From Macrostomum lignano (Eukaryota): a DNA stretch of 64,000 nt. Under the pieces are notes generated by a model. That model was given only the letters and a program-made list of their open reading frames with translations. It was not told where the DNA came from and did no database searches. The position numbers and the translations under genes are program-made. The stretch spans positions 186,001 to 250,000 of the forward strand of contig NIVC01001567.1 of NCBI GenBank assembly GCA_002269645.1. The letters are read 5' to 3'. Position 1 is the stretch's first letter; each line of letters opens with the position of its first letter. Below are positions 8,065 through 14,791 of the stretch, one piece after another.

Positions 8065-11000
8065 ATGTCTGGAGACCAAGGCGACTCTGACAACAGAGAT
8101 GGAGCATCTGGTTCACAAAGCAAGTCTCCTCAGCAGCAGCAATCATCTGGTGCTAAGGGTGGCAGTCTAGCTGAGAGTATGAATGCACTTCGAGTGGCTC
8201 CCTCTTCTGCTGCTGCTGCTGCGGCTGCTGCAGCGGCTTCGGGTTCAGCTTCCACCAGCGCGCCACGACGTTTAGATGAAGCCAAACAGAGAGACTACAA
8301 ATTCTGGGCCACCCAGCCTGTGCCACAGGGATTCACCACTGAATCCAAACCAATTAGCGAGCCAATTGAAGAGGACAAGCCTAAAGACCAGATCAGACAG
8401 ACGCCCTACGATATACCCAATATGTTTGATTGGAGCGAAGTTGACCTGCAAAACGATGCTCAATTGCAAGAGCTGTACACTTTGCTTAATGAGAACTATG
8501 TGGAGGATGAGGACGAGCTGTTTAGGTGAGCTATACTCTTAGAAAAAAATTAATTTCATCCTAATGATCTGTAAGGATTAGAGTCAGTTAAAACATTCTT
8601 CGGGTTTAGAATCCCACCATAAGAATCTGTGGGGATTAGAAACCCTTCATAAAGAGTTGTGGGGATTAGAATCCCATCATGAAGATCTGTGGGGATTAGA
8701 ATCCCATCATGAAGATCTGTGGGGATTAGAATCCCATCGTGAAGATCTGTGGGGATTAGAATCCCATCGTGATGATCTGTGGGGATTCGAATCCTATCAT
8801 GAAGATCTGTGGTGATTAAAATCCCACCATGAAGATCCGTGGGGATTAAGATCCCATCATGAAGATCTGTAGGGATTAAAATCCCATCATGAAGATCTGT
8901 GAGGATTAGAATCCCATCATGAAGATCTGTGGGGATTAGAATCCTATAATGAAGATCTGTTGGGATAAAGTCCCATCTTATTTATGTGGGGATTAGAATC
9001 CCATCATGAAGAGTTGTGGGGATAGAGTCCCATCCTAATTATCTGTAGGAATTAGAATCCTATCATAAAGATCTATGGGTATTAGAATCCCATCATGATG
9101 GATACTTTGGATAAGAATCTCTTCCTATGAGCGTAATAAATTACCTCATTTATCTTCTTCTAATTTACTAAATTTTTATCCTTAGGATTGTTACATTAAA
9201 GCATCCAAGTCCTGACAACCCTGGTAGATTTTAAAATGATGAATTTTAATTTTTACTTGAATGATTGTTAAATCATATTGTTGTGTCAGCCGTTCAGCTT
9301 AATCTGTTGAAGTAAAAGTGCTCGCAAATTTTGCTTTATCGAACCAATCAGATTCGACTATTCGCCCGCGTTCCTCCGCTGGGCTCTGCAGCCGCCCGGC
9401 TGGCGCTCTGACTGGCACGTCGGAGTTCGGGTGCGCAGCAACAGGAAGCTGGTCGGCTTCATCAGCGCCATACCGGCTGGGATTCGAGTTCGCGACCGTC
9501 GGGTAGAAATGGTCGAAATTAATTTCCTGTGCGTCCACAAGCGGCTTCGAGGCAAACGGGTGGCGCCCGTGCTGATCAAGGAGATCACCAGGAGGGTGAA
9601 CCTCACCGGCAGGTTTCAGGCCGTGTACACCGGCGGCGTGGTGCTGCCCAAGCCTGTGGCCACGTGCCGCTACTATCACAGGTGGGTGACCGGATCCTCA
9701 GTTGCGGGTCCACCAGCCTCCCAAATCCTCAGTTGGTGGTCCACCAGCCTCCTAGATTCTCAGTTGCTGGGCCAGCCTCCCAGATCTTCAGTTGCTGGTC
9801 CACCAGCCTCCCAGATCTTCAGTTGCTGGTCCACCAGCCTCCCAGATCTTCAGTTGCTAGGCCAGCCTCCCAGATCCTCAGTTGCTGGTCCACCAGCCTC
9901 CCAGATTCTCAGTTGCTGGGCCAGCCTCCCAGATTCTCAGTTGCTGGGCCAGCCTCCCAGATCCTCAGTTGCTGGGCCAGCCTCCCAGATTCTCAGTTGC
10001 TGGGCCAGCTTCCCAGATCCTCAGTTGCTAGACCAGACAATCGACCCTCTAAGATCCCCAGTGTGACCCGCAATGCCCCACTCTCCCATCCACAGATCTC
10101 TGAACCCCCGCAAGCTGGTGGAGTGCCAGTTCAGCTCTCTGCAGCGCAACATGACTATGGCCCGAGCCATCAAGCTTTACAAGCTGCCAGACCAGCCCAA
10201 GAATTCCAGCTTCCAGTTGATGCAGCCGAAGCACACAAAACAGGCATTTCAACTGCTCAGCAAGTATTTGGAAAGCTTTCAGTTGGCGCCTGTTTTTGAC
10301 GGTGTGAATTTTTCTGATATTTGTTTTTTCTGCTTTTATAGTTTTTATACTGTCTTAGTTAGTGTCAGAACAGTTAAAGTTAATGTCAGGCCAGCCAAAG
10401 TTAGTGTCAGGCCAGCCAAAGTTAGTGTCAGGACAGCCAAAGTTAGTGTCAGTAAAGATGTCAGATCGCTGCACTCGCTATCATCTCACTGCGAACCCAA
10501 CTACCCTCCAGAGAAGGAGTTTGCCCACTGGTTCACTCCACGCGAGGGCATTGTGCAGTCCTTTGTCTGCCTAGACCCGGCCGACAGCAACCGGGTGTCG
10601 GACTTCGCCTCATTCTACTGTCTGCCCTCGTCTGTGATCAACAATCCGAATCACAAGACACTGTTCGCCGCCTACTGTTTCTACAATGTGGCCGGCTCAA
10701 TGACCTGGATTGACTTGATGCGCGACCTGCTAATTCAAGCCAAACGTACCGGATTTGATGTTGTCAACTGTCTTGACCTGATGGAGAATAAAACGTTTCT
10801 TAGCGAACTCAAATTCGGCGCCGGAGATGGCTATCTGCACTATTACCTGTACAACTGGAGATGCTCAGATATGAAGGCCGAGGAGGTTTGTAGTTTTGTC
10901 TCGTTTATCTCCTCAACTGTTTCCCCACCCTCACCTGTCTCCCCATTCCCACAATGTCGCTCCCTAACCCTGCATTTAAAATCCTGACACAATGATGACA

Positions 11001-14000: not shown

Positions 14001-14791
14001 TCTCCACCTGTCTCCCCATCTCCACCTGTCTCCCCATCTCCACCTGTCTCCCCATCCCACCTGTCTCCTCATCCCACCTGTTAAAATTCCCGACACAATG
14101 ATGACACTGATAGGGACATCTGATACAAAAACTCTGAAGATGTCACAGACTTCAAGTCTAATTGTCTGAACCGTCTCCCTATCCCACCTCTCTCCCCATC
14201 CCACCTGTCTCTCCATCCCTCCTGTCTCCCCATCCCACCTGTCTCCTCATCCCACCTGTCTCCCCATCACACCTGTCTCCCCATCCCTTCCTGTCTCCCC
14301 ATCTCCACCCGTTTCCCCATCATCTCCTGTCTCCCCATCCCCACCTGTCTCCCCGTTCCCACCTGTCTCCCCATCCCCACCTGTTAAAATTCCCGACACA
14401 ATGATGACACTGATAGGGACATCTGATAACAAATCTCTGAAGATGTCACAGACTTCAAGTCTAATTGTCTGAACCGTCTCCCCATCTCCACCTGTCTTCC
14501 CATCCCACCTGTCTCTCCATCCCACCTTTCTCCCCATCCCACCTGTCTCCCCATCCCACCTGTTAAAATTCTCGACACAATGATGACACTGATAGGGACA
14601 TCTGATACAAAAACTCTGAAGATGTCACAGACTTCAAGTCTTGTCTGAACCGTGATTGACCTGACCTGTCTGCCTCTCACTCACCGATCTCCTCATCCAC
14701 TGATGTTTCAATATCTACTCTGATAGATAATTTCGCTAATAACCAGTCAATTTCCCATTTTAATTGACAGGTCGGCCTTGTACTGCAGTGA
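8065..14791 (+). CDS. NMT: Glycylpeptide N-tetradecanoyltransferase (N-myristoyltransferase), 463 aa
   Basis: join(8065..8525,9352..9681,10096..10301,10512..10885,14771..14791); all introns GT-AG with consistent phases. Motifs [82 protein letters not shown] and the canonical C-terminus VGLVLQ*. Confidence 0.97.
8604..9100 (+). repeat. ~30-bp minisatellite (GAAGATCTGTGGGGATTAGAATCCCATCAT) in NMT intron 1
   Basis: Tandem copies, each with a small GGGATT-AG-AATCCC palindrome. Confidence 0.9.
9695..10030 (+). repeat. ~20/29-bp minisatellite (CAGTTGCTGGGCCAGCCTCCCAGAT..) in NMT intron 2
   Basis: Tandem copies; same family as the array in ELOVL intron 3. Confidence 0.9.
10375..10450 (+). repeat. 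21-bp tandem repeat (AAAGTTAGTGTCAGGCCAGCC) in NMT intron 3
   Basis: About 3-4 copies. Confidence 0.8.
10920..14570 (+). repeat. 17-bp C-rich minisatellite (CCCCATCCCACCTGTCT)n forming the variable spacers between snoRNA units
   Basis: Fills every gap between snoRNA copies; unit start-to-start distances are 179-456 bp. Confidence 0.95.
10992..14648 (+). ncRNA. SNORD74: Tandem array of 13 box C/D snoRNAs, SNORD74/snR64 (Z18)-like, in the last NMT intron
   Basis: Unit ATGATGA(C)-CACTGATAGGGACAT-CTGA(D')-TACAAAAACTC-TGAAGA(C')-TGTCACAGACTTCAAGTCTAATTGT-CTGA(D), 72 nt. Copies: 10992-11063, 11295-11366, 11653-11724, 11937-12008, 12273-12344, 12490-12561, 12946-13017, 13163-13234, 13443-13514, 13708-13779, 14098-14169, 14401-14472, 14580-14648 (4-nt deletion). 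Sense orientation in the intron. The guide GATAGGGACA is antisense to the conserved LSU rRNA motif UGUCCCUA(U/C)C. As recalled, human SNORD74 has GGTAGGGACATCTGA and yeast snR64 has GATAGGGACA. Confidence 0.85.

Follow-up and report, generated by a model that had tools for sequence, protein, structure and literature searches.

Tandem copies of an snR64/SNORD74-type box C/D snoRNA gene in the last NMT intron of the flatworm Macrostomum lignano

Introduction

How can an animal cell free more than one small nucleolar RNA (snoRNA) from a single intron, and what becomes of an intron holding many of them? The default pathway in animals consists of splicing, debranching and exonucleolytic trimming up to the small nucleolar ribonucleoprotein (snoRNP), and two snoRNAs located in one intron can give a snoRNA-ended long non-coding RNA (sno-lncRNA) capped by a snoRNP at each end (PMC11028025; PMC10557570). 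This question is raised by a 64-kb stretch of DNA from the free-living flatworm Macrostomum lignano (64,000 nucleotides (nt) of contig NIVC01001567.1, assembly GCA_002269645.1; this whole stretch is called the window below, and coordinates refer to it unless otherwise stated). In this window, 13 near-identical units with the features of box C/D snoRNA genes lie in the last intron of a gene for N-myristoyltransferase (NMT), separated by a C-rich minisatellite. Versions of the locus found on two other contigs of the same assembly (L001 and L003, the window locus being L002) were analyzed along with it. The identity of the units, the way in which they became so numerous and the likelihood that mature RNAs are released from them are taken in turn.

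Organization of the intronic units

The 28-nt core AATGATGACACTGATAGGGACATCTGAT occurs exactly 13 times on the plus strand between positions 10991 and 14606; when the window was shuffled with its dinucleotides preserved, no match was found. A covariance model derived from these copies gave exactly 14 matches in the window, namely the 13 intronic units and one copy downstream of the gene, and no others. Each unit consists of an ATGATGA C box, starting at the first coordinate given in Table 1, the tetranucleotide CACT, the guide GATAGGGACAT, a CTGA D' box, an 11-nt loop, a TGAAGA C' box, 25 nt and a CTGA D box. The distance from the C box to the D box is 72 nt, apart from unit 13, in which a 3-nt deletion reduces it to 69 nt. 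The flanks are also common to the units: 17 nt on the upstream side (TTAAAATTCCCGACACA) and 6 nt on the downstream side (ACCGTC). The C box near the 5' end, the D box near the 3' end, the internal D' and C' boxes and a length within about 60-100 nt are all in line with the criteria for box C/D snoRNAs.

A preliminary description of this DNA had placed 13 sense box C/D units in the last NMT intron, and the 13 exact cores, the Pfam NMT and NMT_C domains of the host and the order and spacing of the boxes bear this out. The unit length of 72 nt that it gave applies to 12 of the units and not to unit 13, and the end of the array at 14648 was placed correctly. Its copy number is right for the intron but leaves out a diverged 14th copy at 15336-15409 and the paralogous loci. 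The copies that it had listed as variant (1, 3, 10, 12 and 13) are indeed so, but copies 5, 7 and 9, which vary in their flanks, have to be added; likewise, the 17-nt spacer repeat that it reported is present, together with 18-nt variants of it.

Guide sequence and rRNA target

The D' guide GAUAGGGACA, located directly upstream of CUGA, forms 10 Watson-Crick pairs with the conserved large subunit (LSU) rRNA site UGUCCCUAUC. The fifth guide nucleotide upstream of D' lies opposite the first C of CCC, in keeping with the +5 rule and with the names of the related families, which end in "Cm". The 47-nt LSU block containing this site was found to be exact in at least 120 metagenomic eukaryotic rDNA contigs, 111 of which read UAUC and nine UACC. 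The 10 pairs of GAUAGGGACA with UGUCCCUAUC recur in 111 of these 120 contigs, a result that is partly circular in that the contigs were selected by that very site; the occurrence of the exact 47-nt block in real LSU rDNA and the dominance of the U variant are independent of this selection. The complementarity did not stand out as the single best match in 859 kb, where shuffled guides scored equally well, and this test was replaced by that of recurrence across loci. Given the universal conservation of the site, the guide would be expected to match the rRNA of M. lignano itself. No recurrent complement to the D-side region was detected in the same rDNA contigs with either paralog type; since this region also differs between the two types, the RNA most likely carries a single guide.

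At the Rfam gathering thresholds, no match was obtained in the window or in the six loci searched. With permissive settings, the best match of a single unit was Afu_335 of Aspergillus (RF01513; 27.5 bits, E = 0.002, threshold 50), followed by snoMe28S-Cm2645 of Drosophila (RF00530), which scored 24-25.6 bits (E = 0.004, threshold 48). Both alignments rest on the block GAUAGGGACAUCU, and at the guide block the units show no difference from the Rfam consensus in either family; the scores amount to about half of the threshold because everything outside the stretch from the C box to D' has diverged. The downstream paralog gave the same outcome. Afu-335, which is intronic and of the C/D type, has Cm2316 of 26S rRNA as its predicted target (PMC2377427), and the D' element of Neurospora CD36, a homologue of yeast snR64, plant snoR44 and human U74, guides 26S Cm2299 (PMC2780460). 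U74/SNORD74 guides human 28S C3820, located in GAUUCCCACUGUCCCUACC at ...CCCACUGUCCCUACC (PMC6856654). Here, as in snR64, snoR44, U74, Me28S-Cm2645, Afu-335 and Neurospora CD36, the antisense element is placed upstream of D' and addresses the same LSU cytidine, and the GAUAGGGACAUCU block is common to the M. lignano units and the fungal and insect families.

Formal membership of an Rfam family cannot be claimed at these scores, but the functional equivalence of the guide to that of the snR64/SNORD74 group is well supported by the sequence comparisons. From the box order and spacing, the guide pairing and the site assignments in the literature, the units can be taken to be genuine genes for a flatworm member of the snR64/snoR44/U74(SNORD74)/Me28S-Cm2645/Afu-335 group of box C/D snoRNAs, the RNA being a new, diverged member of this well-known guide family. 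The proposal that an SNORD74/snR64-type snoRNA has been amplified in one intron, with a guide complementary to a conserved LSU site and the +5 rule pointing to a C, was therefore sound; the Rfam check suggested along with it brought no gathering-level match, and the correct families came out on top.

Three versions of the locus and constraint on the units

On the contigs NIVC01000283 and NIVC01004225, the last NMT introns are 2557 and 2036 nt long and contain 7 and 5 units, respectively, and each locus has one additional downstream copy. The anchoring is the same in all three loci, with 105 nt from the 5' splice site to the start of the first unit and about 120 nt from the end of the last D box to the 3' splice site. 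The unique sequence near the arrays differs by 1-3% substitutions between loci, and other tandem repeats show many length differences. Since the flanks differ to this extent, these are separate loci, which are paralogous, homeologous or haplotypic, and not one locus assembled three times.

It might be argued that the array results from a repeat collapsed or expanded in a PacBio assembly, or that it is a satellite in which the boxes occur by coincidence. A duplicated block of 481 bp with 100% identity inside the array could be an effect of polishing or assembly, and the lack of an Rfam match at the gathering level points the same way. The other contigs, with arrays of 7 and 5 units, show that the array is real and its copy number variable: the three contigs have their own variant patterns along with the same anchoring to the splice sites. 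The guide and D' block also matches fungal and insect families, and the constraint falls exactly on the box and guide columns. An assembly artefact is thus very unlikely, the exact number of 13 units being less certain than the array itself, and we give hardly any credence to this explanation in either form.

The C box AUGAUGA is present in 28 of the 28 copies (25 intronic and three downstream) and the guide in all 25 intronic units. D' is preserved in 24 of the 25, the D box CUGA in 24 of the 25 and in all three downstream copies, and the C' box UGAAGA, which has one mismatch from UGAUGA, in 23 of the 25 as well as in the diverged paralog; the copies are 72, 69 or 74 nt long. The defects consist of a D' box CTAA in unit 4 of L003, a C' box TGGAGA in the first unit of two loci and a D box CTAA in the last unit of L001, and all boxes and the guide are intact in 21 of the 25 units. 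The terminal unit of L003 shares the deletion of unit 13.

Comparing units across the three loci is uninformative as a test of selection, the unique sequence itself differing by only 1-3%; because the loci are so close and the arrays homogenise, the identity of the units is weak evidence of selection. The comparison between the intronic type and the downstream paralog is stronger, because the paralog is old enough to have diverged. At the columns of the C box, guide, D', C' and D, the two types are identical at 36 of 36 positions, whereas 17 of the 38 other columns differ and 21 are the same (Fisher p = 1.6e-6).

The downstream paralog occurs as a single copy in all three loci (15951-16024 in L001 and 15100-15173 in L003; Table 1). 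In the window it is located about 345 nt 3' of the NMT poly(A) signal and about 420 nt 5' of the open reading frame (ORF) of ATP synthase subunit c (Pfam ATP-synt_C). Its guide is intact in two of the three loci. In the window locus alone, the guide bears a G>A change adjacent to the target-pairing position, and the array therefore holds the only intact copies there. A possible splice acceptor, ttcttataag|g, is present downstream of the paralog near 15733, and the paralog could lie within a 5' intron or outron of the ATP synthase gene.

As regards secondary structure, the predicted folds of the units are as stable as those of shuffled sequences (z about 0). The terminal stem, GAC/GUC, has 3 bp behind a 3-nt internal loop, or 4 bp in units 5 and 7, the norm for box C/D snoRNAs being 4-5 bp. 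A small hairpin, AGAC...GUCU, in the D-side region is kept in both paralog types. A 7-bp hairpin, GACAUCU (11312-11318 in unit 2) with AGAUGUC (11336-11342), is identical in every unit and dominates the predicted centroid. Its first strand comprises the last 5 nt of the guide and the CU of D', and the second the end of C' and 4 nt thereafter; if formed as modeled, it would mask the guide nucleotide facing the target. This hairpin is kept in both paralog types, and a shorter form, ACAUC/GAUGU, is present in the Rfam Afu_335 consensus.

The spacers and the origin of the array

The spacer repeat unit is CCCCATCCCACCTGTCT (17 nt), with 18-nt variants, and degenerate copies of the 17-mer precede unit 1 and follow unit 13; no copy of the motif was found elsewhere in the 64-kb window. 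The spacers consist of 57.5% C, 25% T, 11.6% A and 5.8% G, that is, 82% pyrimidine with regular CCC and CCCC tracts, and the transcribed RNA corresponds to the C-rich strand. Neither an AG dinucleotide nor a strong donor motif was found in the 2448 nt of spacer. Hidden exons between the units, as in the SNORD116 model, can therefore be ruled out, and all the units lie in one intron. The predicted minimum free energy of spacer RNA is 0 kcal/mol, which argues against RNase III-type processing signals such as those recognized by yeast Rnt1, and this possibility was likewise discarded. UU dinucleotides are depleted about 12-fold in the spacers (30 observed vs about 350 expected). Besides the snoRNA body, the only regular UU sites in each repeat period are those at -16 and -10 before the C box, in the UUAAAAUU element.

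Traces of the amplification are visible in the array. A segment of 481 bp occurs twice at 100% identity (12273-12753 and 12946-13426), and L001 contains a multi-unit block that has been duplicated at 97% identity. The first and last units share variants across loci and the internal units are homogenised, and these shared end-unit variants are the usual edge effect of arrays undergoing unequal crossing-over. Unit 3 has a long ancestral-type 5' flank like that of unit 1, so the duplications had different end points. The window as a whole contains 40 mini- and microsatellite arrays, which make up 38% of its length, for example at 8602-9098, 9693-10036 and 10357-10452 in other NMT introns and at 15463-15690 and 17887-20600. 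With tandem repeats so abundant, the expansion of a minisatellite around an intronic snoRNA needs no special explanation. G-quadruplex-type motifs are associated with unstable minisatellites. The complement of the spacers, (AGACAGGTGGGATGGGG)n on the minus strand of 11067-14563, contains 45 non-overlapping motifs of this type when loops of up to 8 nt are allowed, and none with loops of up to 7 nt.

The array thus most likely arose via unstable minisatellite DNA, by unequal exchange or slippage. It would have started from one ancestral intronic copy lying among proto-repeats of the C-rich 17-nt motif. The minisatellite would have expanded on both sides of this copy, and unequal exchange or replication slippage would then have multiplied the copy itself; the array would now be evolving in concert, gaining and losing units (13, 7 and 5) and decaying at its edges. 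The origin by minisatellite-driven unequal exchange put forward in the preliminary description is well supported by the differing copy numbers, the edge variants, the 481-bp duplication and the 38% of tandem repeats. It had been offered there as one of two alternatives, the other being a polycistronic snoRNA cluster cut by endonucleases; the two are not exclusive, and an outcome of the sno-lncRNA kind had not been considered.

Release of the RNAs from the intron

The sequence data incline us, by a narrow measure, to the view that many of the units yield mature snoRNA. As the internal units are enclosed in one intron, their release would need endonucleolytic cuts. After splicing and debranching, or straight from the pre-mRNA, the units assembling snoRNPs would probably be cut apart, either at the UUAAAAUU flank or within the spacers, which are pyrimidine-rich and predicted to be unstructured, and exonucleases would then trim the pieces up to the snoRNP, as has been proposed for intronic clusters in plants and Drosophila. 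The UU sites of UUAAAAUU might suit a U-specific endonuclease of the XendoU type, in which case release would depend on a cut before each unit; according to a review, XendoU releases some intronic snoRNAs in Xenopus. The mature snoRNA would place the first C of CCC at guide position five, and fibrillarin would 2'-O-methylate that C.

Several observations weigh against such production. Minisatellites have expanded genome-wide, and the amplification can be accounted for without any selective explanation; the identity of the units within and between arrays is no proof of selection. No Rfam family reaches its gathering score (24-27.5 bits vs 48-50), and the 3-bp terminal stem is weak. The copy nearest the 3' splice site, which is the canonical position, is the most damaged in all three loci, and a lone intact downstream paralog could supply the function by itself.

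The units might then be real snoRNA genes by descent, multiplied as a side effect of minisatellite instability and giving little or no RNA: the internal copies could not be released from the intron and would be degraded, and the supply would come from the downstream paralog and perhaps from an end copy. The 40 arrays covering 38% of the window, a copy number that appears unconstrained (13, 7 and 5) and the youth of the loci, which deprives unit identity of its value as a sign of selection, are all compatible with this explanation, as are the box mutations in 4 of the 25 units, the damage to the terminal copy in every locus, the intact-guide paralog outside the intron in two of the three loci and the animal default of one exonucleolytically trimmed snoRNA per intron. 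However, every box and the guide are preserved in 21 of the 25 intronic units, the paralog of the window locus has a mutated guide, so that the intact copies there are those of the array, and intronic clusters are processed in rice and Drosophila. On balance we hold passive amplification with little or no output to be possible, though rather unlikely.

As a third outcome, the debranched intron might be trimmed only as far as the outermost snoRNPs, leaving a stable RNA, at most about 3.6 kb long, that ends in a snoRNP on either side. It would comprise about 2.4 kb of C-rich repeats, possibly binding poly(C)- or polypyrimidine-binding proteins, and perhaps internal snoRNPs. The presence of at least two snoRNAs per intron, the defining precondition for a sno-lncRNA, is found here, and the spacers, 82% pyrimidine with regular CCC/CCCC tracts, contain no predicted structure or RNase III-type signal. 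However, the 3' cap would be weakened by the damage to the last unit (a CTAA D box in L001, the 3-nt deletion in the window locus and L003); any binding partner is a matter of pure inference, and sno-lncRNAs are documented only in mammals among the sources surveyed. We therefore consider this outcome improbable. It seems equally doubtful that a multi-snoRNP sno-lncRNA would titrate poly(C)- or polypyrimidine-binding proteins through its roughly 2.4 kb of (CCCCAUCCCACCUGUCU)n, the copy number setting the dose; if true, such a sno-lncRNA would be without precedent both in occurring outside mammals and in having more than two snoRNPs.

Host gene and neighborhood

The exons flanking the array encode an NMT protein (Pfam NMT, 1.2e-75; NMT_C, 1.6e-70), and the reconstructed protein is 99% identical to M. 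lignano BOX15_Mlig014540. The features of the locus are listed in Table 1. An AATAAA signal is present 3' of the NMT stop codon at 14987-14992.

Table 1. Features of the NMT locus and its snoRNA units in the window
Feature	Position	Strand	Description	Basis or related observation
Last NMT intron	10886-14770	+	GT...AG, 3885 nt, contains all 13 units	GT at 10886 and AG at 14769-70 restore the NMT frame
Unit 1	10992-11063	+	C' TGGAGA, ancestral-type 5' flank	first copy of L003 has the same variants; flank variants also in L001
Unit 2	11295-11366	+	consensus	C 11295-11301, guide GATAGGGACAT 11306-11316, D' 11317-11320, C' 11332-11337, D 11363-11366
Unit 3	11653-11724	+	A>T in D-side hairpin, long ancestral-type 5' flank	
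Unit 4	11937-12008	+	consensus	
Unit 5	12273-12344	+	3' flank CC>TT, starts duplicated block	
Unit 6	12490-12561	+	consensus	
Unit 7	12946-13017	+	3' flank CC>TT, block-duplication copy of unit 5	
Unit 8	13163-13234	+	consensus	
Unit 9	13443-13514	+	5' flank G>A	
Unit 10	13708-13779	+	A>T after C' box	
Unit 11	14098-14169	+	consensus	
Unit 12	14401-14472	+	three changes in D'-C' loop	
Unit 13	14580-14648	+	terminal, 69 nt, 3-nt deletion in D-side region, different 3' flank	
C-rich minisatellite	11067-14563	+	17/18-nt repeat (CCCCATC(C/TC/CC)CACCTGTCT)n, 12 spacers of 84-361 nt each	Tandem Repeats Finder
UUAAAAUU element	11278-11285	+	at -17 to -10 relative to the C box in all internal units (unit 2 as example)	
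Last NMT coding exon	14771-14791	+	VGLVLQ and stop	exon frame
Downstream paralog	15336-15409	+	diverged snoRNA copy, 74 nt, outside the intron	core with two mismatches at 15335; covariance model

The position of the last NMT intron is old, being also found in a mite, a snail and a brachiopod. When the NMT loci of these three species and of an annelid were searched, neither such a guide nor an Rfam-recognizable snoRNA nor a match to the unit model was detected. The idea that NMT might be an ancient snoRNA host was rejected for these four invertebrates, and the hosting is lineage-specific, since their NMT loci lack the unit. The NMT of another Macrostomum-like sample, 81% identical, is represented by an intronless transcript contig of 1983 nt, in which the unit model finds no match. 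When the antisense open frame of one unit was compared with a protein database in search of other Macrostomum copies, no candidate was obtained; the ORFs of the units have evidently never been called as proteins.

The genes for NMT, ATP synthase subunit c and a fatty-acid elongase (ELO) occur in the same order and on the same strand in all three loci (from 8065 to about 24100 onward in the window), and a pantothenate kinase (Fumble) gene follows ELO in L001. The intergenic spacers between the three genes are short in two of the loci. Their order might be due to co-transcription in M. lignano, which we take to be a trans-splicing species. The interval from ATP synthase subunit c to ELO is about 5 kb in the window locus vs less than 1 kb in L001 and L003, and an array of 51 copies of a 52-nt repeat lies between these two genes at 17887-20600. 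The ATP-synt_C gene called in the window locus (17742-18125 in L002 coordinates, 15806-16189 in the window) has a non-ATG in-frame start and encodes 127 amino acids vs 123 in L001 and L003. The first in-frame ATG with a plausible presequence is at 15830, and the non-ATG start is probably a detail of the gene model.

Comparison with known systems and significance

The snoRNA is intron-encoded in M. lignano, as it is in Aspergillus, Neurospora and human, with NMT as its host instead of GAS5, which hosts human SNORD74. A single gene is present in the snR64/SNORD74 relatives vs 13, 7 and 5 tandem copies and a diverged paralog in M. lignano. Intronic snoRNA clusters were described in rice and Drosophila (Liang 2002; Huang 2004, 2005; cited in PMC2780460 and PMC2246290). 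As far as titles and secondary citation allow a comparison, these clusters, like the present array, have several sense snoRNA genes in one spliceosomal intron, which implies release by more than end-trimming. By their titles, however, the Drosophila clusters are of the box H/ACA type, and such clusters usually mix species or isoforms; on the same basis, the M. lignano array differs in having one canonical C/D guide in near-identical copies with a minisatellite as spacer.

Local tandem amplification of C/D genes, with copies rapidly gained and lost by non-allelic recombination, is also seen in mammalian SNORD113/114 and SNORD115/116 and in rat Bsr, and homogenisation with the emergence of subtypes occurs in these mammalian arrays too. 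There, the host is an imprinted long non-coding RNA whose repeated non-coding exons are separated by introns with one copy each, and the snoRNAs are orphans. In M. lignano, by contrast with SNORD115/116, all copies lie in a single intron, the host gene codes for a protein, the guide has a canonical rRNA target and the spacers contain no acceptor. The sno-lncRNAs (Prader-Willi region, SLERT, LNC-SNO49AB) are known with two snoRNAs, as against 13 here; what they have in common with the array is the presence of more than one snoRNA in a single intron. The layout had also been called CRISPR-like, a likeness that is superficial and goes no further than the look of an invariant unit recurring between stretches of other sequence. 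CRISPR arrays are prokaryotic, with unique spacers of similar length, whereas here a eukaryotic (metazoan) intron has spacers of 84-361 nt that consist of a repeated 17/18-nt motif and have no unique content, and there is no mechanistic relation.

According to a recent review, further snoRNA tandem repeats may exist in understudied genomes. No paper on Macrostomum snoRNAs was found in the literature searched. As an arrangement, the array represents a variant of the known intronic snoRNA clusters, undescribed as far as the literature search went, and it is explicable by known processes in a repeat-rich genome.

The handling of more than one snoRNA per intron in animals is poorly understood: the default pathway frees one RNA or yields a sno-lncRNA, and what is known of release by endonucleases comes mainly from yeast and plants, along with a single enzyme from Xenopus. 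The locus provides a natural substrate on which this question can be addressed, with 13 near-identical units, spacers predicted to be free of structure and copy-specific variants serving as built-in barcodes, those in units 1, 3, 10, 12 and 13 distinguishing the copies, in a species kept as a laboratory model. Should the array be unproductive, it would be an ordinary by-product of a repeat-rich genome. With three paralogous arrays of different sizes, it is a clean example of a housekeeping rRNA-guide gene multiplied by minisatellite instability, and as such it bears on how snoRNA families expand.

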